Source of the DNA: Pavona decussata
Lineage: Eukaryota
Assembly (NCBI GenBank): GCA_977016875.1
Contig: CDRNST010000214.1
Location: 2,852,001 to 2,916,000 of the forward strand
Length of the DNA: 64,000 bases
Direction: 5' to 3'
The notes under the pieces were generated by a model. The model was not told the origin of the DNA and did no database searches. It saw nothing but the letters and a program-made list of their open reading frames with translations. A program made the translations under genes and the position numbers. Positions 1 through 63,683 of this stretch are shown here, in pieces. Position 1 is the stretch's first letter. Every line of letters starts with the position of its first letter.

Positions 1-1537
1 GAAGATGGACCCACCACCGGAGCCGCCTACTCCTTGTCCATTCCCTCCCCCGCTACCATACATCCGAGGGGTGTAAACAGAGTCATACGGGATCCCACCT
101 TCACCAGAATCTGTCTTTCCACCTTCTCCACCGTGACCAGCTCCGGAGCCAACATTGTTTTGCGTTATTCCACGCCCTACACCCTCTTCTGGTCCAAATC
201 CTGTGCCGTCCAGAATAAGACTGCCTTCGCTTTCAATCCAGCCAAACGCCGAGTAAATATATCCATGATTCATGTTCATCCGCCCTTCATACTTGATCCT
301 AAACTCGGAACATCTTAAGCTTAACGTGTGGTTAAGAATACGGCTGAAGGTCATTTGCGAGTTTCTTTCCACGGTAACTGTAGCAAACGAGAAGTTGCCT
401 TTCTCGTCTATCTCAACATAACGGCGATTCTCGACTCTAGCAGTCTCAGCGGTGGAAGAAAACTCAACAAAACCACCACTTGCGATGATCAAGTCTTCCA
501 CTCCAGTGATACGTCCCTCAATAATGCTTCTTGTCCCGTAAATATTGACAATAGCCGGAAACACAACTTCAGCTCCTTGATCAATCTTGTAACTGCATGG
601 TGCCGTGGTCTCGTTGGTTTCAGACTCGACGACTTCCACGTATATCGTCTGATTCACTCTGACGTGAAACCTTCCCGTGCCGTCACCAAGGAAATGGTGA
701 ATGATAACAGTGACATTAAGACCTCCCGGTGGGTGTCTAACCTGCAGATTAGCGTGTCTCGTCAAGAACAGTTCATCCAGCTCATAGAACAAATGCTCGC
801 TCTCCAACAACATCGAAGACATGTCGGTTTTACGATCTTCGTTGTCAACTTGCATGTACCTGTGAGTTGCAGTAACGTACGTCTTATTCGTGCTTTTGTC
901 ATACTTCAAGTCAGCATATTGTGGTCCACGAGCAGTTTCTTCAACATACACCGTACCCGCTGCAGCGTAGGTTTTTCCTCCACCTCCGTAAGCTTTGAAC
1001 GCGCCTGCATACTTATGCCTGAACCGCACATGCGCAGAGATACGACCACCTGAGCCACCAGATCCACTCGGACCCGAACCATCTCCTCCCATGACATTTA
1101 CTTCTCCATAACCAGTAAAGTTTGTTGTCTCGATGAGAATACTTCCTCCACTACCCCCGCCAGCACTCGTACCAGAACCGTCTCTACCTCGCAAGGTGAC
1201 AAGTCCATCCAGCTCTATCTCCTGTCCAATTCTCCAATGAAGCATCCCTCCCCCAGAGCCCCCCTTTCCTTGTCCATTGCCTCCACCACTACCAAAGTGA
1301 AGTGCGCGGTATATGGAACCATATGGTTCTCCTCCAAGCTGCCCCGCCTGATAAACACCACCTTCACCACCATGGCCTGCTCCAGAGCCAATCATGTTCT
1401 TCGTATTGCCAGAACCAGGGCCCAACTCTGCTGGGTGGCCAGTGTAGTCCAAGACAAGTTTGCCTTCGCTTTCGACCCAAGCCCATGAAGAATCGATCTC
1501 ACCGTGATTGATGTTAACTAACGCGTGGTACTTAAGC
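1..1537 (-). CDS. Giant gene, window exon 44 (absent from ORF track; runs off window edge)
   Basis: ttttcag|G CTT AAG; LKYHALVNINHG...GGRISAH...IKYEGRMNMNHG...GGGSIF; no stop to position 1; internal period 1,239 nt (413 aa). Confidence 0.92.
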
Positions 1538-4500: not shown

Positions 4501-7500
4501 GTTACCATGGCCACTCCCGCCATTAACAGTCACTATCCCATGACCGGAGAATTGTACGGTTTTGATTAGTACGCTTCCCCCACTACCGCCTCCACTGTTA
4601 GAAGTCCCGTTAGCACCCTCGCTTTCAATGATGCCATCCAAGTGAAGGGATAAGCCGATTTTAATCTATCAAAAGAAAAGACAATTTAAGAAACGCTGCG
4701 GTCGAGTTTTGACTTCACCATACAACCTATGCAGTAAAAACTAGTGCGAAGGTCATTTTCATTGCATGATTTGTACCTTGTACGCTTATTTCGCCAAGAA
4801 GGTCAACAAATTGTTAAGCTGCAAATTCAAAGTGCCTCTTTCAGCGACTCTTGTTCGAAAATTTAGCAGCGAAGAGAATAAAGAGAATAAAGTGTTTCTG
4901 TTTTGGGAATATCAGTCTGATAGTTGCCCCTTGGAAATTTAAGTCTTTTTAAAACTAGTTTATAAGTCCTCAAAGCTTCACTTATCGGACAAAGAAGTGT
5001 TTTAAGAATGTCAAATTTTCATAGGACAACTATTTAACAACTATCCTGTGAAATCGCGAGGAACATTGCTTGGTACTTAGCCAATGAGTTGTCTAAACTT
5101 AGGATTTATTCCGAAAATTTGAGCTGATAATTGATAATTGTTTTATTATTCAACTTTTTCATAACAGAGCATAGCATGCGGAAAATCTGGAGATGATCTT
5201 TATTTCTGACATTATTCTCCCCGACACACGAAATTAGACAAACGTAAACAAATTTAGCCAAACTTTCTTTTGGATGAGACATGTTTCATGAATGAAAATA
5301 TACCTCTATATGGAAACTCATTTTTATTACTCTTTACCTTAGTTGTGCTTCCTCCCGCTCCGCCATTACTTCCACCTCCGCCACTCCCAGGATGCACCGG
5401 GTACACATACGAACCATACCCAGAACCCCCAGCAACCGTACTTCCTGGGGCACCCTCTCCACCATGCCCGGCGCCAGATCCCGCACTTCCAAAATAAGAC
5501 CCGGGTCCAGGGCCCTGCTGTGCTTTGGGACCCTTTTTAGATGAGGTAATACGGGAGCTTCCCTCAAGGTGTGCTTCATTTAGGTTCATGTGAATTGTAT
5601 CCGCAGAGATGATAGCTTTCTGACGCATATACAGTGTGCTGACGTCAAACTTCATGTGCTTAGCGAATCGCAGTTCAGATGATGCTTCCATTGTGAACAC
5701 CCCAAAAGTTAACTCGCCCTCGATCGGCGTTTCGATGTACTCTTTATTCTTCAATAAAGCGCTGCTGATGTTTTCACCGGCTAGAACCAATAATGCATTA
5801 TTCATTAGCATCGCTAATGCCCTTTAGTTGTTAGCTAATCTTTACTGAAATATCCTCATACTCCTTTTTCAGGACTCTGTGCATGAAATCCTTCAGTACG
5901 ACTAATCAAATGAGAACTGTCGAGGGTTGCTTCTCGGTCTAGTGGCATTGTTCATTAGGCTGTACATGATGGTCCCAACGCTTGAGTCTGGGGATAAAAT
6001 CCTATAGTGTGATCATTCAGATGAAAGCTACTGAACAGCACGTTACTGTGATGCTGTTTATTGTGCTGTACGAGGTAGGTCTTACTCTTAAGGTTGTGGA
6101 TGAAATTGTTAAGTGTGACCATTAAAATAAAAGCTTACTAGTGAGTGTGTTCATGAAATTCTAAAACATGAGCATTTAAATGAAAGCTATTAACCAGTAT
6201 TTTCAAGTAGTACTGTTTATTATTCTATTCAAGAAAGGATAATATGCAATAATCTTACTAAAATGTCAGGGTGTAAAAATCAGCATGAGATCAAAACAGG
6301 TTGCAAGATTGTGTCCGGCTGAACTAAACCTCTAAACGTCGGACATTGTCGCCAACCTGATTTGACTTCATGCTGCTTCTTACATACTCTCTTCATACGG
6401 TGGATCTAACTTCGTAGCCTCCAGACGAAATCGTTAAATTGACGGTTCTGAACTAAACTACCATTTTCTACAATGGGCACTTCTGGGAGTACAAAACCTA
6501 CCCAGGAAGACACGCCCTTCTGTCAGTGAGAGGTTGGAGACGCCAGTGATTCGCCCTTCAAGTTCAAACGCTGGGTTCTTTTTTCCGGCAACATGGACAT
6601 CAGATACTAGCATTACTTCACCAGCGTAGTCCACCTTGAAGTTGACTGGAGGGAAGGACCTTCGTCTTGTGAACTCCTGATACTCGATAAAGAAGGTTTG
6701 GTTCCTCCTGACATGAAGAACGGATGAGCCATCGCCAAGCACGGTTACCACTGAGATGGATGGACGTTTGCTCAAACCCATATCCGCAATCTGGAACACA
6801 GCCTGGAAAAAAAAGTGAAATGAATTGTTACGTACGTTACATGGAGCTCGTTAAACTTACATCAATCAAGAGGTTTATCTAATGGTGCTCATGATACTGG
6901 CAAACCTCTCTCAGGCGAACATCTTTGTAACCGGCTCTATCTGGTCATCTTAGAGAGATATCCGCCTTAACGAGAGTTTAGTTACAGACAAACAAGTGAA
7001 ATCAACGGGGACCAACCAGTCTGAGAATAACTTCTTTTCGGAGTGTCCACTTTGATAAGAGGCTCGGGAATACTAGGTCAGCATTTTACTGTCTCGTTGC
7101 TGTTACGATTAGAGTGGTTCAACTTTATTGACTTACATCTCCTTGTAGCATCAACTCATCGAACCCAAACTCTGCACCGTTCTCCTCCGTAGCATTTGTC
7201 TTCAACGTCTTCGGATTCATCTCGTCCAGTAGAAACACTTTCGGCGGATTTGCCTGCTGGTTATCTATGTATAATCGTTTGAATAATTGTTTCCCTCGCA
7301 CTTCTTCGATATACACAGTCCCTGACCCACCATGCTGCGCCCCCGCTGTTACACCACCCAAGGCATAGAAGCCACCTCTGTACTCGTCTTTGATTGACAC
7401 GTGGACGGCAATTCTACCGCCTGAGCCACTTCCTCCGGTAGCTGAACTGTAGGTGTTTCCAGTCCCTCCGCGAGCAGATATAGAGCCGTGGCCACGTAGG

Positions 7501-10500
7501 TATCCAGTTGTGATCCAAACACTTCCGCCACTTCCAGCTCCACTTCCTGTGGAATTAGAGGATGAACGTTAACAAGCAAAGTTACCCTGCGTCGACGTGG
7601 AATAACGTTACCAGGTTGAAACATTTCAAATACCTTCATGGAGAACGATTAGCCAATCAAAATTGGAGGATACATTCAAAAAATTCAACTAAAATTAAGT
7701 TCACTAAAGCCAAAAGCCTTGAATTGTATTAATAGTTAAGGTGCTCTAACAATTGGAAGATTATCTGCGCTAACTTATTCGTCCAAAGAACTTTCAGAAG
7801 GTTATCTTAGGAGAGCTTGTTATCGGAAAGGGATTATATTGGAGAGAATTTTGCATTTCAAACCTAATTGGGTGTGACAACATAAACAGCTTGAAGCACT
7901 GAGTCTACAGCTTAAGAACAAAATCCTCATAAACCTCGGCTTATATTCTGAAGTGCTTGCTATTGGAAGGATTTTAGGGTCTTAGACTTAAGGGGAGAGG
8001 GGGGGGGGCTTCTGTTGGGGAAGAAGGTGTCTTATATTCGGAATTTAATGATATCGAAGAATTCTTATTTGTTTGTGTTTCCCACAACAGTAATTAAAGG
8101 TGGTTCCGCTGTTGCATTTTGCATTCTGTCCTGGATTCATAACGTTACTCAAAATATCATTTCAAGGAACGGAAAAGGGAGGATGTCACCTTGAGATAAA
8201 TCAAAAGAAAGGCGTGAATTTCCGCATTCTTTTTCACTAACCTGAATTTGTAGGGGCGTTGTCCGCATCCACATTAATAATACCATCCAAACGGAAGGCA
8301 AAACCAACCACCACACGCACACGACCCCCTCCTCTGCTACCAGCTGCACCCCCGATCCTTGTACCTCCACTGGCACCAGGAAGGACAGGTTCATACACAG
8401 ATCCCACTTCCTCGCCTCCGCTAACAACTGCTCCGTCACCCCCGGGTGTTCCGTGTCCCGCTCCGGATCCCCCTGAGGACGAGTCCCTTCCCGATCCCGT
8501 TGTTTTGTTTTGGAATCCTCTTCCTGAACAGTCGAGCTTAGCATCTGGTTCGAGGTAGAAATCAGTGGCTTCAATTTCAAAGAACTCGGCTGTAAAATCG
8601 GAACTGAACTTGATATCCTGAATGATAAAAACAAACAACAGTGAGGAGTGAAGAAATTTCCAAGATCTTTTAGTTTGCTTTAGCTTACACCCAGTGATCA
8701 AGATAAAAATGTGACCTTTTTGGATAATTTTGGAAGAATGTGTAGAATATTGTATTGAGATGTATTTCTTGTAAAAAAAAAGAAAACACCTTCGAGATTT
8801 TCGGTTACGAGAGATTCTTAACATAGCGTTTAATTGAGGATAGATTCAAACAGAATTTCAAAAAGGTTCTTAACGATGATGGTAACGTACGATATATACT
8901 AAAACCGGTGGTGCGTGGAAACGTATTCAATAAGGATTTTATTACGAGCCACTTAATGGTAATAGTGGCTTACGATTTAAATAAGAGTAAAGAGATTGAA
9001 AACATAGAATGGTTTGCTTTAGTTTTACTTTGCTCTGTAGTAGAGAACTTGTATGTGTTAACATGTCTAATCTGGGAGAGGTGTTATTTTTCTTTTCTTA
9101 ACCATTTTTATTCTTTCACGTCAATTTGTTTTGGTTGTGATTGTGCTGATGTGTGTTTCACTTCACAATTGATCGTCACAGATTTACATACCAAAAGACT
9201 GACTATAAAACGAACTCCCATCGGTGGTGGGTAGTGTATCACGGTGCCGCTACCAAACTCCAGTGTGGAGAACCGGAATGTCCCGAAGTCTTCAATGGAC
9301 CGATATTTGCCAGCAGAGGTGGTCGCAGTGTGAGCAAAAAACCCAATCTTGATCGTGCGTTGGTACGCTACGTAAAAGTGCTGCACGTTGATCAGGCGAC
9401 CGTTCCAGTCGAACGCCACGTCACCGAGTCCAACGATGTGCACGGAAGTTGCCATAATGGCATTCGAGTCTTTGTCCAGCTTAAAATTAGCATGTGTCCT
9501 TGTAATTGTGTACACTGCATCTAAGAACTCAGCTTTGAGAGTTTGGTTCGCATGCACGTGAATCAGGCCAGTTCTATCGCCTTCCACTTTGTGCACGGCC
9601 AAGTTCAACGGGCTGCCATCTGGGACCAAGTGAATAGAAGCCTTCCGTACCAGATGTATCTCATCGAAGGTGTAGGACGTCAAGCTTTCATTAAGAGTTA
9701 CATAATGATCCCATGTTCTTCCTTTGTTGTCTATCCGAAGCTGAGTGTGAGCATACTGATTGCGCGCATCTTTGAGGTAAACCGTGCCGGGTCCTCCAGC
9801 GTACTGAGTCGTGTCTTTAGATGCGTCTCCAGCGTTTCCTCCAATGGCAGTGTATTGGCCAAGATACTTATTCTCAGTTGGTGTGTCAATGGCAATACGT
9901 CCGCCTGATCCTCCACCCGAGCTGACACCATCTCCTGCACCACCATTAGTAGTGATTAAACCGTGCCCGCTAAATCGTCCGCATTTGATCCAAGTGCTTC
10001 CTCCACTGCCACCTCCAGCATTCGCTCCACTGGCCGCATCCTGTCCTTCGTTAGCTATTGTGCCGTCGACGTAGAGTTCATCTCCGATTTCCATAAAGAT
10101 GAGACCACCACCTTTACCGCCATCGCTGTCACCACGGCACCCAGCTGTACCGTATTGGTTGGGGGTGAAGAGATTGCCATGGGATGGAAGCTCATTGGCA
10201 CCACTATGACCTAAAAAGAGTACGTGAAAGGAATATTGAACATGATCTCCGTCTTGTAACAAACAGATAAGGGGGTGGGGTAGTTTCAAAGAAAGTGTAG
10301 AGCTGCGTTAGTGGGGAGTGGAAACAAATCCTAGGTTTTATCAACAGAGTTGATAAGGTAATTAAACCACCGTAAAGAGATTCTAAAGCTGACGTTTGGA
10401 GCGTTAGACCTCATCGCTCTGAGAAAGGGCTAACGCTCGAAACGTTAGCACTCGAATCCCTTTACAAACGGTGGCCAAATTGCTTATCAACTCTGCTGAT

Positions 10501-13500
10501 AAAACTAACCATTCGTTTCCACTTCCCACAGACGCAGCACCAAATTTTCTCTAGAACTAACCCCCTTGTATTTTGAACGTGTCGAAATATAGTAATACTT
10601 TCGATAGCATTCATAGTATTCAAAGTATTCAAAATGTTCTCTGGTTAAGCGTGGCCCAGGAATGAAAGGACGCGGATTGTTCTGTAACCAAACAGTCTTA
10701 CCTTTTCCTCCTTTACTACCATAACTTCCCCCGGTACCTCTACAAGAACTTGGAAGAGCAGAGGAATCGTAAGAACTTGGGCGATCTTTACCAGATGCGG
10801 TGATTCTACTTCCGGTTTCAAGAAGAAGAGATGTGATGCTGACGTGATACGTATCTGCGACAATTACGGAGCCGTATTTCATGTGAACGAGACCAGCTTC
10901 GCACCGCATTCCACGAAAGTCAGGGAAATAAACCTCTGAACCATCTTGGATCTCAAACGTGGCCAAGACAAAGGTACCTGGAGCGGCGACAGTGATTGTA
11001 CCGTTATGGATATCAGCCGAATGAGCGTGAGAATGGAATCTTGACTTCAAGCGCTTGGTGACGAATAAATGAGTGACATCTATCATTCTACCATCCAGCG
11101 TGAAAGATGAATCACCTGGTATTTGTCCAGTTCCTTTTGCACCGTCACCGATGACGTACAGCGACGCGCCGAACACCATCTCGGCATCTTTGTCAACTCG
11201 TAAGTTCACTGCAGGTTTTGAAACGCTGTGCTCGGTATTAGAAGCCTCCAGATAGATTGTTTGGTTAGCGCGAGAATGAAGAAGCCCTGTGCGATCTCCG
11301 AACAGGCGCGCCATTTTCAAAACTGTTCTCTCTCGTCGTACAGCCATATTAAGCGCCGCTCTTCGAAACAAATGTACCTCCGAGAAATCGTGGGAAGTCA
11401 TGTTTATTTCATCGATTGTGACTGGATCTTGAACAGATCGCATCAGATTGTCGATTCTGTAAAAAAAAAAAAAAAACAGAGAGAGAAGGAAAAAGTTAGG
11501 TATGTACGTGAGCAAGTAGGCGCGTAAGTATGTTGGTACATTACTTAGTGGACAGTTGAGCATCTCTCACTTTCTCCAAGGGGTGCTCCAACAAAAAGCG
11601 AAGTATGCGAGTTTCCGTAGGGCGGGTAATTGTCCTGCGTTTCAGTCTTTTTTTTTAGTCTGACAAAAAACAAACATTTTCACAATTTACTGGAGAGATC
11701 TTTTGATCAGAGTTGCGTGTAAAAGATGTTCAGAATCTATCACACTCTATCGCATACAATGGACATATTTTGCCTTCCTTAATAGAGCGTTTAACTAAAA
11801 CATCGCGCTAAATGAGAATACAGGTCCGTATAGAAGAATATGTACATACTACACCCATAAGTTGACTAAGATTTGTTTTGTGAATAAGTGAATGATCATC
11901 GCAGAAAGCCTGAAACAAATTTGAGGCCTGAACGGGATTCGAAGCCATGACCTCTGCGATACCGGTGCAGTGCTATTATTCAGTTATTCATTCTTTTGTA
12001 CGCAGTTCAAATGTATGGATTTTCATGTATTCACTTTGATTTGTTTTTTGCAAAGAATAACTTTATATATCACACAGACAGCCGAAAATCATTCTTCAAA
12101 ATTATCGATAGATGAACTTTCTTTTTTCATTTGCTTGTTATCCAGGTATATTGATTTTCAAACACAACAAAAGCTTTGGCTGTCTATGGTTAAATAGTCT
12201 CAAATTTTACTGAGCTTAACCTGAGCTGCGTAAACGGTCTCTTGGAGCGAATGTCTAGCAGAAACACAGTGCCGGGCCCTCCGTATGCTCCTGGAAGAGA
12301 GCTCCCACCGAACGCTAGGTAGGTTCCTCTGTAAGTGTTCTTGTTTGTATAGATTGCTATTCTGCCTCCTGAACCACCTCCAGCAGCAGCCCCTCCTCCA
12401 TTACCACCATTACTGTTTAGCTCTCCGTAACCTGTGGAAACATAAATGAGGTTTCGCTTATCAGTGAAAACGCTTAGCTGCAAAATTTAATCGACAACAT
12501 CAAACATGATGTGACGTCCAATTCCTCTGAGCCTCGGTTTTTTCCCGGTAATCACGCCCTCCAACTGAACACAGTTTCATTGCTAAATTACCATAATTAA
12601 TATTTACACTCTTTATCCCCATATATGACTTTCTAGAAATAAGCGATCCTAACGGTATGCAGGCGTGCGTCAAAATTAAGGAACAATTGAAATGATTTAC
12701 GTCGCCTTGAGTCTCCGCAGCTCAGTTGTAGAGCATCCAACCAACATGTCCAAAGTCACGCATTCTTGTAAACCCATTATTCGTAAAAAGAAATGAATAA
12801 GTTTATTTAAAAAAATCCTAAATAAAGAGTTCTATGCTGTCGAGCGGTTTTGTCATGGCTGTGGTAAAACCAATGTTTATATCAAAAAACAATTACAAAT
12901 TAAAAAAATAAATAATAAAACAACAGAACAATAAGCGGGAAGCAACAACATGTAATTGACGGTGCCAAGCTCTGAAAAAATGTCAGAAAGGCAACACGAT
13001 ATTGTTTTGAGTTTTATACCTGATTGGCTGAAAACAAATGTTCGTTTATCCGGGTAAAGAGATAAAGGGAAGGTTCTTGCCAAATAGGGACGCAAGTCAT
13101 GGCAAGATAGGAAATGCCAACTTGCGTACACAAACTTATAAATATGTTGGGTGGCCAAACGTATTCGTAAATAGGGGTAATTTGTAAATATGATATTTTA
13201 GTGAAGCTGTGGTAACTCTATATCAAATACAAAAATAAGTAAGACCAACATTCCCCTGCTTGCGTTGGCTGTCCAAATAGTGATAAACGTGCAGCAACGT
13301 AAGTACGAATTTGTGCTGAATCAAAGTTAAAGTAAACACAAACTCAGTGTCAACTGAAAACCTCTTAAGAACTTTAGAAAGCTTACCAATGAAAGTGTCT
13401 GTGTTGAACAGCAAGCTTCCTCCGCTTCCGCCACCTGCACTGCTGCCTCCTACGGCACTTCCACCTGCGGTCGTTATTGTGCCGTCATTGATAAGCAAGG

Positions 13501-25500: not shown

Positions 25501-28500
25501 ACATTTTCCAGAATGTGTTCCACTTCAAGCTACGTGGCAAACACCAGAAAACAAACTACTATAGTAAATCTTATTTACCTGAGTGTAAGTTTTCCTTTAT
25601 TTCCTACAGTCACATTTTGAGCTCCACTCAAACTTCCAGCCACAATCATCTTAATCCCGTCAACGACCAGGTTTTGAGGCAATTTCAGATCACCCCTGGC
25701 ATATACATTGACACCCCACAGGAGCTCCGGTTGCTGTCCTTGGCTATCAGACAATGTCATCTTTAACTCCTGATTGGCTCGGACGTGCAGAATTCCTGAA
25801 CGATCGCCACGGATGCCTCCGATATCCCACCGAACAAGCGATTCTGGTGGGTTCGTAAGCACGGCAAGTTGCGACTGGCCCCGAATATCAACCTCATCAA
25901 AAGTCATCGCCACAGTATTTGGTACCGGTGTCAACCATGTTCGCCCACCGTCATAATTCACGTCTGTGATGTCATCTGTCAAAGGAGCACCTATGTTGTT
26001 ATTATCTACGATAAGCTGTTTGTAATCTTTCAACTTGTTGTGAAGATATACAGTCCCTGCACCACCAGCTTCTTTGCTACCTCCTCCACCAAAAGCCTCT
26101 ACTTTTCCACTGAAAGTTCGCTTGTCAAAATCAACGGAGATTCGTCCCCCACCCCCTCCCCCGCTGGTACCGAACAATCCACTTCCTCCGGAGGCTCGGA
26201 CAATTCCATTCCCTTTAAAGGACTTAGATGAGATCCAAATACTTCCTCCACTGGCTCCACCTGTGGAATGGTTTTGACCATTCTCGCCGTTTGCGCCGAC
26301 TAGGCCATCTATGGTGACGATTTCCCTTGCTGCCAACCTAATCACTCCTCCTCCAGCTCCGAACGTGCTTCCACTTCCGTGGGAGAGAGGCTGGTAAAGA
26401 GAGCCATACGCCTGGCCGGGAACTGAACCCGAGTTTCCATTTCCCCCACGGCCGCCATGGCCAGCGCCAGCAGTACCTAGAACCGAGTAAGACAGGTTGG
26501 ACAACAGTTGATTGACGAGGATAAAGGAATTGTGTTGCTGATAAAAACTGAAAATGTGTATTTGATTCTCAAAAACTTGTGCAAACGTTCGAAAGCTATG
26601 TTCACTTCAAAAAGACAACGTGACTGACAATAATNNNNNNNNNNNNNNNNNNNNNNNNNNNNNNNNNNNNNNNNNNNNNNNNNNNNNNNNNNNNNNNNNN
26701 NNNNNNNNNNNNNNNNNNNNNNNNNNNNNNNNNNNNNNNNNNNNNNNNNNNNNNNNNNNNNNNNNNNNNNNNNNNNATAGCAAATGAACGGGCGAAAAAC
26801 AAAACAAAGAACGGAGACAAGGAATATATGAGTGAACAAGCAAATGAGACATTAGATGAATGAGAGAATGAATTAGTGGGGAGTGATGAATGAAGGTGAA
26901 TGGAGAGGCATTAATGATATAAGAAGGAACGAAACGGACAGACGAACGGACTGAAATACAACACATGAAATTTTGTAATACCTGATGGTCTTCCAGGTCC
27001 AATTTTTGCAGCAAATCCTTGTTTCTCAGCAGTAACAACTCCAGAGGCCTCTACTTCAATATCACCGGCACTGATGTTGATCCACTTGCCTTGTATCAAG
27101 CCACCCGCCATCACTCTTAAACTCTCATGTAGCAGGACGTTCACTGTAGGGGAGCTAGTATCGGTGTCAGCTGCTGTGAGCTTTGCGCCATTCATGATTG
27201 TTAGGGAGTTCAAGTTAATGGTCTTCTTGCTGAAGCCCTCCGTTTGACCCTGGACAAAGCATGAAGTGAGGTAAGTGATACCATATGCTTGAAACTGCAT
27301 AATATAATTTACTTTGGAAAAGGAGTTAAAGTTCTCCTTCCAATTCGGGCTGTTCAGTTGAGATTTAATTAGTTCAATAAACAAAAATTTATTGTTTATT
27401 GTCCTGAAACACAAGTTAAGTTTATTAAAAGATTAGCTGACTCTGTAACTAACTGGCTGACTGACTAATGACTTACTGGCTGACTGACAGGTTGATAGAC
27501 AAACAGACAGACTGACTGACTGACTGACTGACTGACTGACTGACTGAATGAATGAATGAGTGACTGAGTGGCTGATTACATGCCTGAGTGACTGAACGAC
27601 TGACTGCCTGCTTTCTGCCTGACAGACTGGCTGACTAGTTCACTGACTGAGTGAGTGAGTGAATGAATGATTTGACGGACTAACTGAATAGTATTGCTTA
27701 AATACGAAAGCATGAAATCGTTATATTTCCAGTGAAAATACCTCTGCTGTCACCACGAACTCTGCGCCTCCCCCAATAGTCAAATTATCCATTCCATGGA
27801 TCATTCCTTCTAGAGAAATCCTTGGATAAAACAAATCCTTCAGCAAGACATCACGGGGCAGATGCAGAAAGCCTTCATTGTAAATGTGAAAACTTGCCGG
27901 AAACAGCCTGGGAGCATAATTAATGTATACCCTGTTCTTCTTCGAGATATGAATCAACCCGCCAAGATCGCCTTCAAGTCGTTCCACGTTTAGTGTAAAC
28001 GTAGGTTTCAGGTGATAAATCGCAAGGTGGCTTCCTCCGCGAAGCTGTAACAGATTGATGGTGAAGTCGTCCATGTACTCCGCAAGGAGCCACGCCCTTC
28101 CACCGTCGTTGGATATATCTCTGTAATTCGATATATACAGCTTGGTTGCGCGGTAGCCATTGTTGTCGATAATCATTGTCTTGTGGGTTGTGTTTCTCGA
28201 GAGATAGACAGTTCCAGGTCCACCAGCCTCGGTCCGACTCGCGCCACCGTGAGCGGAAAATTTGCCCGCGAATCTTGTGGTCTCATAATGTGCAGCGACG
28301 CGGCCTCCAGCTCCACCTCCAGCGTCACCAAATGAAGCCTGCGCGACCTTGCCACCGTTGGCAACTATCTTGCCTTTTCCTGAAAACAGCGTTGATTGGA
28401 TGAGGATGCTGCCGCCACTTCCGCCTCCGGTGCCTTGATTGACAGCTGTGTTGGCTGATGCATCGAGTAGTCCGTCAACTTGAATGATGTGCGCCGCGTT

Positions 28501-31500
28501 GAGTTTGATGGCTCCACCTCCGGAACTGCCAGGCTAATAAGACATTACAATACATCAATAGCTATATACGAACCTAAAGAACATAGCATTGTGGATGTAT
28601 TATTTAGGTGTTAGCAGTCATCATGGCTTTAAAAGGAGCTGTTAACTGCTGCCCATTAAGCTCAGTTGGAAAGGGCATTGGACTGCTGAATGGAGGGTCG
28701 TGGGCTCACGTTCAAAGCGGAACACCAACCAGGGTCTTAAAACAACAAGTTGATCATGCTGACTGTGTTTATCACATTGTCTCAGTTCAGATGATCGTGT
28801 CATTGGGAGGTGACGTTAAGTCATTGGCATTGTCTCATGTAGGGACCATCATACAAAACGTAGGGGACGTTTAGAACGTACTCACGGCTTGAAGAGTAGG
28901 GGGTAGAAAAATAAAATGCATATTCTTGACTGAGTAATTAACATAAGTAGTGTAATCCTGAGGAAGATTTTTTGAGGTAACGTTGACTGACGTTTCGACA
29001 ACATGAGCGGGAGTCATTATCAGAGTCAAGTAACAATACGCTACGTTGCTGTGCTTTTTGCATTGTTTTTATAGAACTGAAAGCCTCAAAACTCTTGCAC
29101 CAATGTACTGTTACAAGTTTGAAGGCACTAGAAACCGGAAGTGACCCTAGATCTTTTTGTTTGACTATCTTGACTTGGCATTCTGGTTGGGCAGCGGGTT
29201 ACAATATTTGGTTTTGAAAAAACTGAAAGTAAGCGTGGGTTCCAGGTTCAAACAGACTAAAAACACTGTCCCAAAACTGTTCTCAAGTCTTTTCATGAGG
29301 CTATGTAAGCACGCACGCCATTTTCTATTTTCAAGGAGAACTAGTAACTAGAGTCTTACCAAATCCTGATAACCTTGTCCTCCGCCACTTCCAAACGCAA
29401 GTGGTATCTCAAAGGACCCATAAGCCTTCCCCACGATCGCTTGATTAGAGGTCTGTCCACCTGCCCCGCCATGCCCTGCCCCAGACGGGGATGTTGCAGA
29501 TTGCTTTCCAGGCTGCTCACCCTTCATGGAAGTAAACCCTCGCCCGCGGGCAGTTAGAACACCAGCAATATCGATAAAAATGTTATGCGCGCGCAAATGA
29601 ACTTGGCTGACGTCCATCAGTGCGCCAGCGAGGATAGTAAGCTCTGCTGTGAGGTTGACTGTTAGTTTCGCAGGCTCATTAGTACGCTGGTAAAAGGTCC
29701 CTCCAGTTAAGATGGTGATACGATTCAATAACACGACGGCTTTGGTTGGTGAGTTGGCATGAGCGTCTTGTGTGACATCAAAGCGGCTGCTGTGTGCAAT
29801 GATGAGGTTTGAAATTCCAACTAACTCGGATTCAGCATAAATGGAAGATTTTTGCAGAAAAACGTCAGATGGGAGGTAAACTTTAGAATCCTGCAAGAAA
29901 ACGAAAACTGCGATCAAAGGAAGAAATTTCCTGAACATATACAAGCAACCTTATGGATGGGACAGTTGCAGGGAAAAAACGTTTTGTTTCTTCAAGTTCT
30001 CAGCCTCCACGTTCGCGCTTTACAGATTATTTTACTTCATACGATGTTTTGATGGAAAATACTTCCCAGGCGTTATCTAGTTTCTTGATTTATTGTAATG
30101 GTGGTTTAATTTTGATTGAAGGTATTTTGTACAAACTAGAATGTCTATTACTGATATTTCCTCTCTGCAAGATGCGATCAATTCTTTTTTCACTTTTTTT
30201 TTATTTGAGATTTAAAGAAAGGCCGGTTTGGTTCCGAATGATATGTCAGCGATCCATGAGAATCAAATCTAGACTCACCAAATCACCACTTACAAACGAA
30301 GGAAGCCCAGAACTGTAAAATGGTCTATTACGTACTCAGTCACAGAAGCAACTCTAAGTCTGCTTTAAATAAAGAGGCAAGTAGTCGCAAAAGATGCAAC
30401 AACGCCCAGACATGTTATGAACTCACCCGATAAGTCCTAAGTGTAAAAGGAATCACGGAATCGTTGCTGGCATCCAGATACAACTCCTGTTGTCTTCCCA
30501 CATGAATTGTACCTGTGAAATCTCCCTTGTATTGGTTCATCTTAAAGTTAACGCTGCCAACATTGTTCTGAATGGCAAGATGTGCATTTCCGCGAACATC
30601 CAACTCATCTACCTCAAAGGTCGCTGACCCAGGATCATTAAACACAAGCCACGTCCTTGAGCTGTCTTGTTCAAGATTGGCGGCTTGGAACGACGAGGTG
30701 GCACGGCCGACAAACACCTTAAGCTCGCTTAACGCAACGTGTGACTCCAGTCTTGTCAAGGTCAGGGTGAACTTTGAGATAGTGTCTTCTATGATTACAT
30801 CATTGTAAACAGTAGTATCAAAGCATCCAGCAAATGATCTCACATCTTTCGTTCTGACTACAAGTCCAGAGGAAGGGCTATATGTAGTCAAACTAAAGCT
30901 GACGCGGTAGCCTCGATGACAGAACTAAGACAAAAAGATAGAAAACTGTTATAAAAGAGATTTTANNNNNNNNNNNNNNNNNNNNNNNNNNNNNNNNNNN
31001 NNNNNNNNNNNNNNNNNNNNNNNNNNNNNNNNNNNNNNNNNNNNNNNNNNNNNNNNNNNNNNNNNNNNNNNNNNNNNNNNNNNNNNNNNNNNNNNNNNNN
31101 NNNNNNNNNNNNNNNNNNNNNNNNNNNNNNNNNNNNTCAATCATTGATTCATTATTTCTTGATTCATTCACTCATTAAATCATTCACCCTCTCGCTGTCT
31201 CTTCCTCTCTCCTTTCATTCCTTCGTTTCCTTCTTTGCTTCCTTCTTTTTGACCATAAAAAACCGCCTGAGTGTGACGCGCCATTCTAAGTTCTCAAAAT
31301 ATCACGATTATATAGCAAAACCTCTTGAAAATGTGGTCCTACCTTTTGTATCTGTGCATAAAATACTCAAGCAGGCCGTGTCCATTCAAAATAAGGCTAC
31401 CAAGACAAATATTTACAATAATGTTGTCCATTAATTTCAAGAGAATGTTTGCCTGGTAATTTTCAATTTGGGTTGTCATGTGGAAGAAAGGGCAAAGATA

Positions 31501-34500
31501 CAACGTTCATGAACACAAATGTGAAAACAGAAACTTGTGTATAAACATAGTTAATTGAGGAACTAGTTGTGAAGCCTTGTCACGACAACAATAGTGCTGC
31601 AATTTATATTGGAAGGGCCGCGACTATGCACAATCCTTTGTTTTAACCTTCTTACTACAGCTGAATATCTTATCAGGAAAGTTTCTATTGGTCAGTTTCT
31701 CCAACACATTTCAAACTATATTGTGGTCTGTGCACAGTCAAGGGCAAAAATGTTAACTAAAACATATCAGAAAGAAGTTTGTCAGGCTTCCTAATCATTG
31801 CGTTTTATTCACTCTGGTATAAATACATACTTACCGGATAGAGTCGGATGTGATGAATGTACATGTTTCTCGGTAGAGTGACAGTAATGACAACATTAGT
31901 GTACTGTGACTGCACTATGTAAGCGTTCTTGACGTCTCCATCACACAGTCGAGTCAGAGAATAGTAGTAAGTCTGAGAGGCGTGATGGTAGCTCTGCGTA
32001 GCACCATTTGACGAGAATTGAAATCCACTTATACTAGTGTAAACTTGCGAGTAGTCTCTATAAATGGAGCCAGGATGTAGTTTCACTTCTTCCACCTACG
32101 AAAAGTAAAAAAGAAGCAGTGAAACAACTTCGTTCCACACAGTCAGTGACTGCTGTGGAACAAGCTTCCACACTGAAGTCATCAGGAAGAACTACGGTAG
32201 CTAGTTTCCGTCCCTATTCCTCAACTGCATTCTGCCTTGGCGGTGTCACTCCTTAAGAGGCTTCTAAGCTGGTGCACATGCTGACTGGTCAATCAGGTGT
32301 TATAACGCTATGTGATGTGTTTCCGCAACACCACACGTAAGACATTAAAAAGGTACCATCTTCCGTCCTGAATAATCAATAACATCTTATAGCTCTGACA
32401 AGAAGATCAATTAAAAAAAAAAAGCTCCTTTTTTTCCTTAAAAACTACGCGTCTTTGTTCTCAGTTTACCTGATTTATTCGTTCGGTAATCGGCCTTCGA
32501 CCTTTGTTATCGACTTTTAGCGTTCGGTGCGCTCGGTCGGAGTTATTTCCCGCCTTTTCCACGTACACGGTTCCAGCAGCACCGTTCTCCAAGTCGCCTT
32601 TCCCGCCAGCAGCCTCAAGGACGCCATCAAAGAATCCTCCACGGTAATATAAAGCGATTCTGCCGCCTGACCCTCCACCACCTCCTCTTGTTGAGTGACT
32701 ATATCCATTTCCACCATTGGCCTTAGGAAAGCAAATTAGACAACGAACATAACATTAGACTCAACAATACAAAATAAGCTCAAAGCGATCGTATCTTGAC
32801 GCTAATTAAGCTGATGTTACCTGCAACGATTCGCAACAACGACTTTTGGCCCGACACCACGTCATTTTTTTGTTGCAATGAACTACTGGTAACGATGACT
32901 TTCAACAAGGAAAGTTAACCCCTTAAATATGGGCCAGCGGAAGATTTTCTGCGCAATATTTGCGTTGAAGCAAGTTGCGAGTATTTGGATCACCTTCAAA
33001 GACATACAACGTCCTTCAGCGCGAATGCTGAATTGGTAATCGTCCGCATAAACATATATGTTACACGGATATTATCCTTGCCGATTGTCTTGTGTATTAA
33101 ACATATACTAAAATATGGTGTGGAGATGAAATAAAAATCATCATTGCGATTAGTCGCGTCTGGTATCAGCTTTACTTGTAATTCTGATTGGTTCATTGAG
33201 CTCGTTACTTATGTTGTGATTGGTTAGAGGGATACCCGGATTCGAGTTGTAATCCAACTCACAGAAGTTCTATGGATAGATTGCTTAACATAGCTGTTAT
33301 AGCAATTTATTATTCAACACATTGTAGCACTGCCCAAATATGGCCATGGTGCACTGAATATTCGTGCTTTCACATGGTTTGTTAGTTTAGTGGAAAACAA
33401 ACTGAAAGTTTACTTCATTTTACAGGATCTTCTGGTGGACAGATTAACGCAAACTGTTGATCGATTGAGAGAAGAGATTGATATGTGTAAGACGCAGTGT
33501 TCAGCTCAGCTGGAGGAAACTAAGGCTGCACAAAAATCACTCTCCGAGGCAACCACTGAAATAGAGGTTAGTATTAATAACAACATTATTAAATGTACAC
33601 TTGTCTGTGATACATGTATGTTACAAAGATCCACTTAGATTCTTTCTTACTCCATTCAGTTAACCCTTTAAACTTTCTTTTTATTTTCATGTTTTTGAGT
33701 TTGCCTTGTTCTGGGTGATTTTGTAACATTATAGCGACAGCAACAACATCGTTTTTAAGAACAGCGAGAGACCTTTGTATTTCTTTCTGTGTTTGCATTG
33801 ATAGTTGGCCCCCCGTTGGGTTACAAGGTCAAATATTCCACATTTTTTGGTCCTTAAACTAGGAAAAATGCATTATGTTGCCAGGCTGTAGCTTGAGAAT
33901 TTAAGCTGGGAACCTTTTATTGCCCTCCACATCTATGGCACGATATTTCACTACAATTGGCAGAATGTGGGTTGCATGCAATGAATGATTTGTTTTACAG
34001 GCAGATATGAACATGTCGCATTTTTAACCTATTTTTTTCTTGCATTTAAGTACCTTGAGAGTACAAAGTTTACTAGAAATTGCCAGAGAACGTTAAATGT
34101 ACTCCTTTAGACCTGCCAATGCCAGAAACCTCTTCAATCAAACGTTGTATCTGGCGTTGTTTGTTTTCCAACATAGGCTATTCTCCTCTTGTACCGAGCA
34201 AGTAAAATTATCGTTCGCCGGCGAACGATAAATCGAATAAAAAATGTTAAAGGGTTAATACCCATGTATATAGTCCATGCCTCCAACGTTGGATGATACT
34301 TTTGAACCAATAGAAATTAGTATCCAAAGGAGGGGAGGAAGTTCTGTTCGAGATAGCGCAGCCGATGTTTAGATATAGCGGCAGTCTACTGAAGTACTTT
34401 AGAATAACATTATGATTGTTTAAAGCTTAGAATTGTTGAAAAAGAATGCGGTTGGTAAGCACACCTGCACAGTTCCACTTCCTTCAAACAGGTTTGTCCT

Positions 34501-54600: not shown

Positions 54601-57600
54601 GTTCGGTTAAGATCGCCAGGTGAGCCCCTCCGTAAATCTGAAGCTCCTCAAAGTGAAAGTCGTGAGTACCGTTTGCAAAATGATGGCTTCCCGATTCCGG
54701 CAATATCCACGCTCGACAGCCGTCTTGTGAAAGATCGGAATAGTCAGATATTCTTGTTTTCAGCGGGTGTTGGCCACCATTGTCAACTAACAGTGTTCTA
54801 TGGGTGTGAACTAGGTGATATAGGAATGCTGTCCCGGGACCTCCTGCCTCAGTGTTGGATGCACCGCCCTTGGCACCTCCTCTTGACTGGAAGGACCCTG
54901 TGTAGGTGGTGTTTTCAGTGAAGTACACAGCGATCCTTCCACCAGCCCCTCCCCCAGAGTCACTACCACCGGCACCGCCATTTACTGTGATACTTCCAGT
55001 TCCTTAAAAAAAAAAAAACAACAACAACAAAAGAATTGGTTGACAAAGCACACGAGGGTACGAAACCCTCTCCAAGAAACAATAATAAATCTCAGATATA
55101 AACCGTACATTATTATTTACCTCTAACCACACAATCGTAAAACCATATTCCAAGGTACTCAAAAATTTAGGTCATTCAAAGTAAGACCAAACAACTGTAA
55201 TCAAAATACAAGAGACTGATGACATCCCTACTACTGAAAACCCACAAGATCTTCTTTTTAATGAACTGGAGAAAACAATTCTCGAAGGCAGAATTCCGAC
55301 TAAAAGATTCTTATTATGAATTACTCAATAAGGAATACTATTTCCTAGTTTAAAAGAGAATGCTGATAAGAGATATCAGAGCATAGTTTATGACCATCTA
55401 CAAGCAATATCTCAAACGGAATATAAATCCTAGAACTGTAGTTCGAAAAGAAGTTAGGTCACTACTAAAAAACGGAGCAACGAAGCACCTATCACTGTGA
55501 AAGATGCAATGGATGTTGTGTCACTAGTACTATTGACACAAATGATGGATCAGAGAATGCACTCTGCAGTGGATGGTATGACTTGCTCTCATCTGGCCTC
55601 CTAGCTCAGTCGCGGTTGATCAAATCCGAAGATCGTGGGTTCGATTCCCGCCGAAGTCAAACATTGTTTCGTTGGCTCGTGCGGTCTCCTATTTCCTTAC
55701 TAGGGCTAACGCTCAATAGGAAATTCATGGGGTGCACTTAAGCACTTAAACATACACTGCAGAGTTAGTTTTCTGTTCCATTACCTATTACTGTATTACT
55801 TGCAAGAAAAGCGTTCGTTGATCCCTTGCTAAATTGAAAATAAATCTCGGATCTAAATATATTTAAATCCTCTACCTTTCATCCTGTAGCAGTGCATCCA
55901 GATACTGCCTCCACTTCCCCCTCCACTTACAGAATCCCCGCCTGGGTCTCCATCAGCTGTCACCTGTCCGTCAATTTGAATGACATTCGTGACATTGAAC
56001 CAAATCACTCCACCTCCTCTTCCAGATTTCCGCCCCCCACCGGAACTTCCGAATCGGAGGGGTTCGTAGAGATCTCCATATGCAGCTCCGACTACTGCGG
56101 CATGTGTTCCTCGTCCACCTCTTCCACCGTAGCCAGCGCCGGAGGAACCGTAAATGTGTGATGAACCGACACCTAGATTGATGATCCCATGGAGGCCAGA
56201 ACCTTGAGGGTGAGTTCTATGCAACAAAATAAGATAAAAATGAGTAGAAAAAAGCACAAGGGGAGACCCTCACAAAGTCCCTTGGTTAACAAATGTAAAA
56301 ACACAGAATCAAACATTACTACGTAGTCAAACATTTAGGCAAGCCTGTGTTGAGTTTAACCATTAAAAGGAAAGCTGCTGAACAGCACGTTCCTATTTCT
56401 CACGCTATGCAATGCGTTTGGATGATTTTCCCATGTGTGATCATTCAAGTGTAAGCTATTGAGCGAACTTTCTAGTGTTTCCAGTGGGATAATTTCTTAG
56501 AGCAAGCGAATTAACAACAAACATCAGTAAACTACCTGTTGTAACCCTGTCCATTAGCCGTCATCAGCCCACCATCATCAATCGTGATATTCTCTCCAAG
56601 AACAGTCATCCTTGTGCCATGGAACAGTCCACCTCCTTCAATAAAGAACGCCCTGGCAATAATCGTGATTCCAGGGTGAATAATTGGAGAAGTAAAAGCA
56701 CGCATAACGCCATCGTCCTGTACTCTCACGGTGTCGAACTCGAAAGAGCTGTTCGTTTGATTGGCTGTCCTTCCCCCGTGGTACATCCAAAACTCTCCGC
56801 GGTGATGGAGCGTCATGTTTTGAATGTGGTCAACCGCGCCGGAAATGTACAATGTCACGCCGTGCACTTCCGTGTACGGCGCCAGACCAAGATAACCACC
56901 AGCATACACGTGCACGCTGAAGGGAACGTCTATTTCCGGTCGGTGCAAATCCATGACTTGATTTTCGGAAACGTGAAGAGTTCCGGTGCGATCTCCGATC
57001 ATGTGCCGGAAGAATAACGACGCATTCCGACCAACGGGCTCAGTTAGCAGCGCTAAATGACCGCCTCCGTAAACCTGAAGTTCTTCAAAACGAAAATCGC
57101 GGCCCTTCCCGGCAAAATCATGATTTGCCGATTGCGGTAGGATCCAAGCACGGCAGCCATCGCTGGTTAAGTCATTGTAGTCTGCTATCGCTGATACAAG
57201 CGGCTTCTGTCCTCCGTTATGGATGAGTAATGTACGATGCGTGTGGACCATATGATAAAGGAACACGGTACCCGGTCCTCCGGCCTCAGCCTTACACAGA
57301 TCCTCTCTACCAATTTGGCATCCAAGGGCCGCTCCACCTCGCGCCTCATACACAAAGTACGTTGACGTCTCGTTCACCTGGAAATAAATTGCAATCCTCC
57401 CTCCCGCTCCCCCTCCCCCTGGGGATCCACTGTGCGTGGAACCAGCTCCTCCGTTAGCAGCTATCCTTCCATAGCCCTTGATCCTCTTACAGTACATCCA
57501 GATGCTTCCACCGCTGCCACCACCACTTCCGGTCAATGCAGCTGCATCTTCACCATTGGCCGATACCAACCCATCAACGTCAATCAATCCAGTCACGTTC

Positions 57601-60600
57601 ATCCACAACATACCTCCACCGTTACCGCCTCGAGAACTACCTGATCCTTTGCCACCAGCGCTACCAAATATATAAGGCTCGTACAAATCTCCGTAGGCAA
57701 ACCCAGTTTTGGTGGTACCTCCTGTCAAACTTCCCCGTCCTCCGCTCCCACCATGTCCGGCTCCTGATGCCCCGTTAGCATCAATCCCGTGGCCAGGATT
57801 GATTGGCCCATGAGTACCATTGCCTTGGTAACCATGTGACGTATTGTACCCCAGACCATCCGCAATCAAGGATCCACCAGCGTCGATTGTAATGTTTTCC
57901 GTGACAAATGTGAGGCGTGAGCCTCGAATCAGCCCTCCTCCTTCAATAAACACCGCGCGAGTCGTGAAGACAAGGTCGGGGTCATTGATTGGTGACGTGA
58001 CGCAATGAATGGTACCAGTGTCTTGGACTCGAATGGTATCAAACTCATACTGGTTTTCTCCTAGACGTTTATCTGTTCTCCCTCCATGATTAAGCCACAG
58101 ATTGCCGCCATGGTGTATCGTCATATTCTGGATGTAAGCAAGGACACCCCGAACAATAATTTCAACTCCATGGATTTGTGTGTAGGGAGCGAGGCCAAGA
58201 AAACCTCCGCTGTAGATTTGGGCACTGAAGGGCATGTCGATCTCAGGCCTCTTCAAATCCATGACTTGTTTATCTCCAATATGAATCATTCCGCTCCTAT
58301 CCCCGATCATGTGTCTAAAGAACAACGAAACGTTTCTCGTGTCGTTTCCCGCGAGAGGCCAGATACCCAGGTGAGCCTTGTTGTAAATCTGTAACTCTTC
58401 GAAATGAAAATTGTGTTTGTGATCAGCAAAATGATGGATTCCTGATTCGGGCATTATCCACGCCTTGCAACCTTTGAGAAGGAAAAGAAAATGATTTAGT
58501 CATAACTTGGCCCAATACATTGAACAAAACCAGGCCTGTAATATTTCACAGGTTTACAACCATCGCCATCACATCTTTTGAAAGATTATTTGATTTTACT
58601 ATTTCATCTGACGAGTTTTCCTTGATATCATTGCGGTGATGGGCCAAAAGGTGAGCTGCAAAAGGCTACAAATGGCCAGTTATTTTATTAACACAATGTA
58701 AAGACCCTTTTAAACGGTTTTAACATTTGTCCAACATTCGTTCAACGAAAGTTGAAGGGATGTTGGGCAAATGTTGCATGAACGGAGTGTTCAAACGGTT
58801 TCAAGGTCATTCAACATTTTCAAGAACAAAGGAAATGTTGAATCGATGTTGAATGACAGTTTAAACCAATTTAAATTTGATTCAATACGCTTTGAACAAG
58901 CTTTCAACATTTCTTTACGCTTTCAACAATGTTGGACGACCTGTTCAAACGCCCCCGACATTTGGTTCAACAACTGTGTTGAATGCATGTTGAAGCAAAT
59001 GTTGAAACAGTTTAAACGGGCCTTAAAGGTTTCTGGCACGGATGGTTAAGATGTAAATGGATTCCAACTTAAACAAATTGGGCCAACGATGACAAATTCT
59101 TCAATATTGTATTTTTGATAAAAATTGGAAATAATCGTCTTAATTATTTCGTAAGTCTAATTTATAATTAAGTTGATGTGATATCTCACGATTATGCCAA
59201 ATGTTTGACCAAAATACCATCGAAAATGTTTACGACATTACCCCTTCAAACCAAAATTTGAAAACCTTCTGCAGTCTCGAGCTTGAGAATGAAACTACAA
59301 GGGTTAAAAGAACTGATGTTTTACCTTCTTCGTCTAATTTTGCGTAGTTTATGTGCTTATTTAGTGGTTTGCCCCCATTGTTATCAAGAAGCAATGTACG
59401 ATGAGTATGCACCAGGTGGTATAGGAAAGCTGTACCAGGCCCTCCATTCTCCACGTTTTGTAGTCCTGTCTTCGCTTTTCCTCCGTGAGCTTGGTAACTA
59501 GACAGAAAAAAGAAAACACTACATTAAAACGAAGGGCGTCCAATTGAAAATTGAAATGGGCATAAGAGGGGAGATCACGAAAACATTTCCATGAAAACGG
59601 CCAGAGGATCCCAAAGGTAACGGAGGATAAGAACGCCTACAGTGTAACGCACATGTAGTCGATAGTCGACGATAGTCGATTTCAAGAAAACTACAAAAAT
59701 GATTTAATTAGAAGTGGTTACGTTCTTGCACGGAAATATTAGATAATGGCGTGATATATCAATTACTTAGTCTATCAACTGTGAGATTTTAAGTCGATTA
59801 ACCGACAGCTACTTACGCCGTTAGTTATTGGCCTAAAATGTAACAGTTGCACCCCACCCCTGTAATTATTGTCCCGGATATCAATTAGCCCACACGCTGT
59901 TGATGGACAAATCTACGGTTAGCCTATGAAATTAGTCCGTGGAAAACCATATCAAATTCACTCCTGCGTCACGCCAGTTGAGCACCCTTAACGTTAGTCA
60001 TAGGATCGATTTCCAGCCGATGTCCGGTGAAGCGAGCCTGTGCTCCCGCCTCTTCCTGGGGAGAGAGTCCCGGACTCGAAAGAGCGGCGAAATCGAGCCT
60101 ACTTTAGTCTAGGCTTCAATTATGGCGGATCTGTGGGTGTTAAGTGAAATCAGTATCAATTTTAGTAATGTCACCTGAAGTATGAGAAAGTGTCGTTCTT
60201 TCTAAAGTAGACAGCAATTCTTCCCCCTGCGCCCCCTCCCCCATGATAATAATATGGATGTGACGTATCCTCGGGAGACGAGCCGCCATTTGCAGTGATC
60301 TTTCCATAGCCTTTGATGATGTAGCAGTGTACCCAGACGCTACCGCCACTGCCCCCTCCCCCCTGGGGAAGGGAGTCAGCACCGTCCGCCGAGAGGGCTC
60401 CGTCAATTTCCAGAAGATTAGTGACGTTCAAGAAGATTGTTCCACCTCCGGCACCTAAAAGAGATTTCAAGCGCAATCGGTTTAAGTCTAAATTTCGTGA
60501 AAGAAATGGCCGATTTGTCTGGGCTTGTCTCGGGAAAATTAAATTCTTTCGTTAAGCGATCGCCTTGAATTGCGCAGTAGCAAATGTTAAGTAAACTCTA

Positions 60601-60746
60601 TGAATACAAAAAATGTCATGTCGGTATTTATCATGAGCGATTTTAGGCTACAAACTTCTAAATACAGAAGACAACGCGACGCGGCAGGATAAACCGATAT
60701 TTCAGTTTAATGGTCAATTTTAACGAGCAATAACGTTCCGAGCATA

Positions 60747-60801
<55 letters not shown>

Positions 60802-63683: not shown

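Follow-up and report, generated by a model that had tools for sequence, protein, structure and literature searches.

The 64,000-nt stretch of the Pavona decussata genome analyzed here (the window; contig CDRNST010000214.1, C214:2852001-2916000) represents the central 23 units of one minus-strand gene, which extends past both ends of the window. We consider it probable that this is a single coral gene of ~125 kb encoding a type I membrane glycoprotein of ~21,000 residues, roughly twice the part visible within the window, in which ~31 stacked beta-helix modules form a surface rod or spacer. The folds themselves are already known, as are giant beta-helical surface rods in bacteria; what appears undescribed is the protein of animals, along with its size, architecture and conservation unit by unit. 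Indeed, no description of this protein family was found in the literature, which was covered in part, so that this counts as weak evidence.

Coding segments were delineated by combining a hidden Markov model (HMM) of the repeat unit, built from four units of a 2,499-codon open reading frame (ORF) at 13226-20722, with tblastn of orthologous proteins. The longest open frames in the window all reside on the minus strand, and the unit HMM matches ordered minus-strand ORF pieces along the entire window, each picking up at the final model position of the previous piece (for example 237-353, then 354-394 together with 35-288, then 289-372). Such run-on of the HMM coordinates is the pattern of a spliced tandem array, rather than of independent genes. 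Altogether, 45 homology-supported stop-free segments touch the window (1-64000), with 10,439 aa inside it (~10,400 codons) and 23 beta-helix unit C-termini, in close agreement with the 44 exons, ~10,000 codons and 23 units proposed by a first-pass annotation of this DNA. Over the whole gene, 72 segments of this kind total 21,210 aa, and genome-wide, in the 602-Mb assembly, 58 of 58 unit matches fall within a single minus-strand locus at C214:2841315-2935261.

One giant exon of 7,451 nt (13387-20837) encodes ~six and a half units as a single open frame, with its 3' boundary defined by RNA contigs and its 5' boundary by a predicted acceptor. ORFs of the length of this exon are present in many other assemblies and form a graded series of 99% to 36% identity. 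Given that the locus is a long tandem repeat and that the window contains four assembly gaps, we also considered whether it could represent a decaying or mis-assembled repeat array without coding function, a scenario whose probability we judge to be practically negligible. The units are only 27-31% identical, and thus could not have been collapsed by the assembler, the 45 segments are stop-free, spliced RNA contigs exist, and the big exon is open over 2,499 codons, with 61% identity to an orthologue of the same length. Three of the gaps are intronic by prediction, and coordinates on either the HMM or an orthologue stay continuous across each of them: 26635-26776 in intron 26477-26981 (flanking HMM positions 240 and 247) and 30966-31136 in intron 30925-32469, both placed by HMM and splice prediction, and 49818-49949 in intron 49596-50820 (flanking Saccoglossus residues 4046 and 4041), placed by tblastn and splice prediction. 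The fourth, 2438-2658, clips a minus-strand exon (2659-2864), the 3' end and donor site of which are hidden. At this position the coral reading stops at "...VVFA" and restarts at "GIKEN..." with the next exon; the corresponding interval spans five residues in two sea-anemone proteins, leaving ~5 codons unaccounted for.

The unit array is expressed, and it is spliced over part of the gene. Its sequence is present in runs labelled "organism A" (RNA by guess) as well as in coral metatranscriptomes. Contigs from runs X1 and X6, aligned on 7300-13299, skip five introns (7547-8241, 8618-9191, 10211-10701, 11457-12220 and 12432-13386), every one of which is of the GT..AG type on the minus strand. Considering that the genome has this one locus only, and that it contains introns, the intron-less contigs derive from RNA. 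These contigs are 2.1-2.6 kb long and bridge several exons, providing support for both borders of the minus-strand exons 12221-12431, 10702-11456, 9192-10210 and 8242-8617. Joined at the RNA-supported sites, six exons yield 3,407 codons with no stop, as compared to 174 and 209 stops in the other two frames.

To seek the gene ends, the flanks on both sides of the window were retrieved. An ORF located ~19.4 kb to the right of the window opens with MSGNQLPRRSIILFVLLQAVSDLVQAA, a typical signal peptide, after which a half-unit and then exons with discoidin-like motifs follow, the latter probably representing an F5/8C domain. In the opposite direction, units extend to ~10.7 kb left of the window, where the last unit and the first teneurin-type EGF repeats share one ORF. 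Downstream of the units there are at least 50 EGF motifs of the teneurin type and subsequently ~seven EGF-VWD-Laminin_G_3 modules, including one ORF that is open for >3,300 codons; the Pfam domains recovered in these C-terminal ORFs are EGF_Teneurin, EGF_TEN, VWD and Laminin_G_3. The stop is found ~41 kb left of the window. In the last exon (L012:8868-9908, minus strand), the one strongly hydrophobic helix that the gene encodes, IIVISVSSFVFLWFLLLILIVFC, precedes the polybasic stop-transfer stretch RRKKKRK and an acidic tail of ~100 aa that ends with EDEETAV-stop, and the same exon gives a faint Cadherin_C_2 match (E 0.01). The ETAV tail end resembles a class I PDZ ligand.

From the N- to the C-terminus, the order is then signal peptide, half-unit, probable F5/8C domain, ~31 units with one further jelly-roll-like insert, at least 50 EGFs, ~seven EGF-VWD-LamG modules, transmembrane helix and ETAV tail. 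With a single signal peptide and a single transmembrane helix, located at opposite gene ends, the protein is predicted to have type I membrane topology and a cytoplasmic tail that is short. In support of one gene rather than two, the sea-anemone model P0273 likewise joins units, EGFs and VWD/LamG. The first-pass annotation had noted that neither start nor stop falls within the window and had proposed extending the contig in search of signal peptide, transmembrane segment and stop; all three were recovered outside the window, and the very large extracellular protein that it proposed reaches ~21,000 aa for the whole gene. Its picture of a free filament has on the other hand to be revised, as the protein is predicted to be membrane-anchored, and the unit array represents only the distal part, with EGF/VWD/LamG modules following.

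It is conceivable that the locus instead holds several separate genes or isoforms, such as a secreted unit-array protein next to a separate EGF/VWD/LamG membrane protein, and that no polypeptide of ~21,000 aa is made. In public annotations, the orthologues are without exception broken up into models of 3,000-7,500 aa, and the read evidence spans just 6 kb of the gene, both of which fit such a scenario. The split can nevertheless be traced in the acorn worm Saccoglossus kowalevskii, which provides the best named match, XP_077861759.1 (4,555 aa), and, 0.8 kb on along the same contig (GL018007.1), a 5,938-aa model flagged "LOW QUALITY". The two Saccoglossus models, P0001 and P0271, map colinearly along the coral locus, and by tblastn the end of P0001 and the start of P0271 are placed 37 nt apart within the single minus-strand coral exon 44772-46001. 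Being colinear and split inside one coral exon, they represent one gene that has been divided by annotation, in line with the earlier suspicion that gene predictors may fragment such a locus. Separate genes are also difficult to reconcile with the last unit and the first EGFs being in one ORF, with the lone signal peptide and transmembrane helix at either end, with HMM coordinates that run on over every exon border, and with RNA contigs that bridge several exons. We therefore regard separate genes as quite unlikely, and a single gene as the better description of the locus.

Next, the repeat unit was characterized. Its period was derived from the Gly density and a recurring G-T-V/I-Y/F-I motif, giving a core of 380-396 aa in the big exon and ~390 aa overall. 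The mean unit spacing amounts to ~450 aa, owing to some longer units and to the presence of a single non-unit insert. The previously proposed unit of 413-450 aa hence agrees with the spacing but exceeds the core. As mentioned, the paralogous coral units are highly divergent, and the repeats escaped self-BLAST of the big ORF but were disclosed by the motif spacing and the HMM. One complete unit of 394 aa (16736-17917, minus strand) displays a strand-rich N-terminal half and a Gly-rich C-terminal half with GGGSGGS, GGGGxGGRI and GTVYI motifs. No Pfam or NCBIfam model covers the unit; searches of Pfam, NCBIfam and PDB sequences returned nothing above threshold, with only weak matches to K1-lyase Rider, G8 and AgmC_N, besides desmoglein noise. 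N-x-S/T sequons, described as frequent in the first-pass annotation, are indeed modestly enriched over the coding sequence of the window (129 compared to 86 expected from composition, ~1.5-fold), but not in the big exon alone (18 compared to 21 expected).

The array is interrupted by a non-unit insert of ~190 aa between two units, which recurs at the corresponding position in 10 species belonging to 5 phyla. In the coral it is encoded on the minus strand in two parts, the first (52615-53001) sharing its ORF with the end of a unit, as apparent from translation and the orthologous inserts, and the second (50820-51026) identified by translation and by tblastn with residues 3979-4046 of P0001. Profiles of the insert gave only marginal F5/8C and Laminin_N matches, and it is possibly a galactose-binding-like jelly roll.

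Structural models were then exploited to shed light on the fold. For the complete unit at 16736-17917, AlphaFold with a 45-sequence alignment returned a model consisting of strands only, with a predicted local distance difference test (pLDDT) value of 92 and a predicted template-modeling score (pTM) of 0.91. Comparison with 48,161 chains using VIA-align placed the beta-helices of the EtpA and HMW1 secretion domains on top (Z 18.9 and 18.3, 267 residues aligned), followed by generic beta-helices with Z 9-13; more than 80 chains reached Z>=8, and among the 50 listed all are beta-helices. Foldseek against the PDB recovered weak generic beta-helix rows only, and the ESM Atlas unnamed clusters from molluscs (template-modeling score, TM, 0.89), Lentisphaerota (some with G8) and Verrucomicrobiota. 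When two consecutive units (15584-17917, minus strand) were modeled together, using 42 orthologous exon segments, pLDDT amounted to 90.5 and pTM to 0.83; strands 391-398 and 401-409 span the unit boundary, and the junction has a pLDDT of 86-92. Such confidence is not expected for independently tumbling domains, and a continuous rod is thus the predicted geometry. In the models, each unit is a right-handed parallel beta-helix that continues into the next unit, congruent with the beta-solenoid architecture resembling a bacterial adhesin, and with the rigidity, that had been foreseen from the letters of the window, the rigidity being a prediction here as well.

The first-pass annotation had further interpreted the Gly-rich parts as polyglycine-II helix bundles, of the type seen in the Gly-rich domain of ALK/LTK and in phage gp38, placed on beta-solenoid spacers. 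This may seem attractive for model residues 225-292, ~68 per unit, which are Gly-rich, are devoid of strands in DSSP (a program that does not label polyglycine-II) and have a pLDDT of 82-94. The remainder of the Gly-rich half is however mostly composed of regular three-strand rungs of ~33 residues with glycines in the turns, and runs of five or more glycines are rare (6 in 13,889 aa). Moreover, ALK, LTK and gp38 chains are absent among the best matches of PDB Foldseek, VIA-align and BFVD, and the BFVD search gave no gp38-like or tailspike-specific match. Polyglycine-II bundles are accordingly unsupported and, on the whole, very unlikely, residues 225-292 being the one segment in which they could still occur.

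A profile search of 1.84 billion representatives with the unit identified 11,943 proteins at E<=1e-3, many with 6-13 units, and the relatives belong to many animal phyla and to bacteria. In addition to Saccoglossus (LOC100369350), orthologues were detected in Patiria, Asterias, Diadema, Lytechinus, Amphiura, Ptychodera, Mactra, Mya, Potamilus, Mytilus, Pecten, Solemya, Owenia, Ciona, Branchiostoma and Actinostola, with 23-71% identity over long stretches. They share the units, their order, the inserts and the EGF/VWD/LamG tail with the coral protein, but their annotation breaks them into pieces of 3,000-7,500 aa, to which neither a function nor a family name is attached. All are named "uncharacterized", "hypothetical", "Tenascin-X" or "TENX-like", consistent with the earlier statement that no characterized orthologue could be named. 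Named records include Patiria miniata LOC119725183 ('Tenascin-X' in UniRef), Mya arenaria MAR_011998 and a 'TENX-like' entry of the same species, Actinostola QZH41_005193 and Ciona LOC104266654; the 'Tenascin-X' labels stem from the EGFs alone. A Desmophyllum protein is 78% identical to the coral VWD-LamG module, and a word-based search with this module returned cnidarian-type ORFs only, with no vertebrate VWDE. The identity series of the big exon, the Desmophyllum match and the presence in coral metatranscriptomes jointly point to a scleractinian coral as the source of the window.

We also generated a tree of the Gly-rich halves, in which several coral units are nearest to position-matched units of other phyla and not to their own flanking units. 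For example, the full unit of the minus-strand exon 56535-58475, which holds one and a half units by HMM and a weak G8 match in Pfam, groups with the position-matched units of Owenia, Saccoglossus, Mya and Patiria. The positional neighbors across phyla, in combination with the 27-31% identity among the coral units, argue that the array predates the cnidarian-bilaterian split. At the level of sequence, the comparison hence shows an array that is conserved unit by unit between Cnidaria and Bilateria.

Outside animals, relatives of the unit occur in giant surface proteins from Verrucomicrobiota, Planctomycetota, Lentisphaerota and several candidate phyla. The proteins of the first three phyla, unnamed or called 'carboxypeptidase-like regulatory domain-containing' and in some cases with G8, are true sequence relatives of the unit, above all of its Gly-rich half; many carry 6-9 units, and Atlas models reach TM 0.74-0.80. 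These PVC-group giants possess other flanking domains, without the EGF, VWD and LamG of the coral protein. Myxococcus AgmC is linked to the unit through a weak match to NCBIfam AgmC_N. In the tree of the Gly-rich halves, monophyly of the animal units with respect to the bacterial ones was left undecided, the largest pure animal clade comprising 21 of 88 units, nor did it settle the direction of any animal-bacterial exchange; no horizontal transfer is claimed.

Several known systems were compared with the coral protein. The adhesins of two-partner secretion (TPS) systems and autotransporters, EtpA, HMW1, FHA and Ag43, are likewise long right-handed beta-helical surface rods, but the coral protein differs from the EtpA/HMW1 type in being a predicted eukaryotic type I membrane protein with introns, EGF/VWD/LamG and ~31 modules. 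Membership in the TPS adhesins was ruled out, as neither a Pfam Haemagg_act nor a PDB sequence match was obtained, the coral gene moreover being a eukaryotic one that has introns and encodes a signal peptide. The closest animal analogy is PKHD1L1, a stereocilia coat protein that is a large type I protein with a beta-helix-containing ectodomain (PMC6707252). Members of the fibrocystin family, PKHD1 and PKHD1L1, resemble the coral protein in being very large, of type I, with beta-helical ectodomain parts (G8, PbH1) and a short tail, whereas the coral protein is ~five times larger and built from a different unit. Assignment to the fibrocystin/PKHD1L1 family fails: the best G8 match reaches 18.4 bits as compared to the Pfam cut-off of 22.9, and no IPT/TIG was found in any ORF scanned. 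An equally weak G8 match is obtained for Saccoglossus P0001.

Tenascin identity was also ruled out, because the C-terminal ORFs contain EGF_Teneurin, EGF_TEN, VWD and Laminin_G_3 only, with no fibronectin type III or fibrinogen globe. Teneurins share the EGF type alone; they are type II rather than type I proteins, characterized by a YD-repeat shell and a toxin-like C-terminus, and no YD/RHS matches were found in the coral gene, so that this identity was dismissed as well. With the transmembrane mucin MUC4 and the VWDE/teneurin-type EGF proteins, the coral protein shares EGFs, a GDPH-bearing VWD close to the membrane, one transmembrane helix and a short tail. A mucin PTS domain, NIDO and AMOP are absent from it.

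Aggregated, these features suggest how the protein may work. The modules, with ~12-13 rungs and ~6 nm per unit, would stack into one stiff rod with a total length in the order of 200 nm, held away from the cell by the EGF and VWD/LamG stalk. The ETAV tail may tie the protein to cortical PDZ scaffolds, and the jelly-roll domains are candidate sugar-binding tips. In such an arrangement, the protein would belong to the apical coat of epithelia and serve there as a spacer, tether or adhesion rod of the cell surface.

GDPH is the autocatalytic site of the VWD regions of MUC4, MUC2 and RGM-type proteins. Of the ~seven VWD-like domains of the coral protein, only the membrane-proximal one has a true GDPH (TFGDPHFTS; ~38.6 kb left of window position 1, C214 ~2813420), which makes it a candidate autocatalytic cleavage or shedding site. 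The ectodomain could then be shed and work mainly in mucus, mesoglea or the skeletal organic matrix rather than as a cell-bound rod. Retention of the motif solely in the domain nearest the membrane is consistent with this view, as are the VWD and EGF modules, which are typical of gel-forming and matrix proteins. We consider it unlikely, since the GDPH cleavage is a candidate only, orthologues are found in animals without skeletons, and the conserved transmembrane helix and PDZ-type tail end favor a role at the membrane.

A number of observations speak against, or at least temper, the proposal of one membrane-anchored rod of ~21,000 residues. Support from RNA reaches five introns, as reads cover only the 6-kb stretch and the runs consist of contigs marked 'RNA?'. 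No single transcript was observed to extend over the entire gene, and most of the ~70 junctions are derived from homology and GT-AG prediction only. The homology-guided splice heuristic reproduced four of the five RNA-tested junctions exactly and misplaced one donor, and it also yielded some spurious mini-segments; exon borders beyond the RNA-tested stretch are therefore approximate. One junction is hidden by the gap at 2438-2658, where we infer frame continuity from the sea-anemone comparison. Internal promoters, polyA sites or alternative isoforms could also be present. The first F5/8C-like region of the coral protein matches the Saccoglossus F5/8C domain only weakly. Finally, rod length, PDZ binding, lectin activity and GDPH cleavage are properties that we infer, and experimental support for a function was found for no species in the orthologue records or the literature.

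A broader interpretation is possible, and we advance it tentatively: that the protein is an undescribed, ancient eumetazoan type I membrane protein of ~21,000 aa, whose ~31-module array was fixed unit by unit before the cnidarian-bilaterian split, with a module shared with, and perhaps acquired from, the PVC-group giant proteins, and that it constitutes a new spacer or tether class, apparently missing from vertebrate and ecdysozoan models. Such an absence would explain why the protein has remained unstudied. If it is made as one polypeptide, it is among the largest animal proteins known, and a conserved, unstudied part of the cell surface of corals, sea anemones, echinoderms, hemichordates, molluscs, annelids, tunicates and amphioxus. 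Animals would then use bacterial-style beta-helix rods at a huge scale, and the array would offer a clear case of tandem units that have each kept their own orthology over a period exceeding half a billion years. Annotations that cut such genes into "uncharacterized" or "Tenascin-X-like" pieces distort gene counts as well as matrisome and proteome catalogues. For coral biology, the protein is a candidate component of the epithelial coat, the mucus interface or tissue anchoring.

Some minor features of the locus were also recorded. Two intronic stretches, 10334-10465 and 11929-11974, show very high summed contig depth in the coral metatranscriptomes, with many loose ends; ARAGORN detected no tRNA in the tRNA-like letters of 11929-11974, and both stretches are probably repeats of the short interspersed nuclear element (SINE) type. 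Upstream, at 24-40 kb beyond the right end of the window, the neighbor on the same minus strand is a coiled-coil gene with multiple exons, which terminates ~5 kb above the start of the giant gene. An intronic tandem repeat ~4.1-4.4 kb right of the window end, directly after an exon, reads as VSQS(VSQS)n in all three minus frames, and looks like a simple 12-nt microsatellite.

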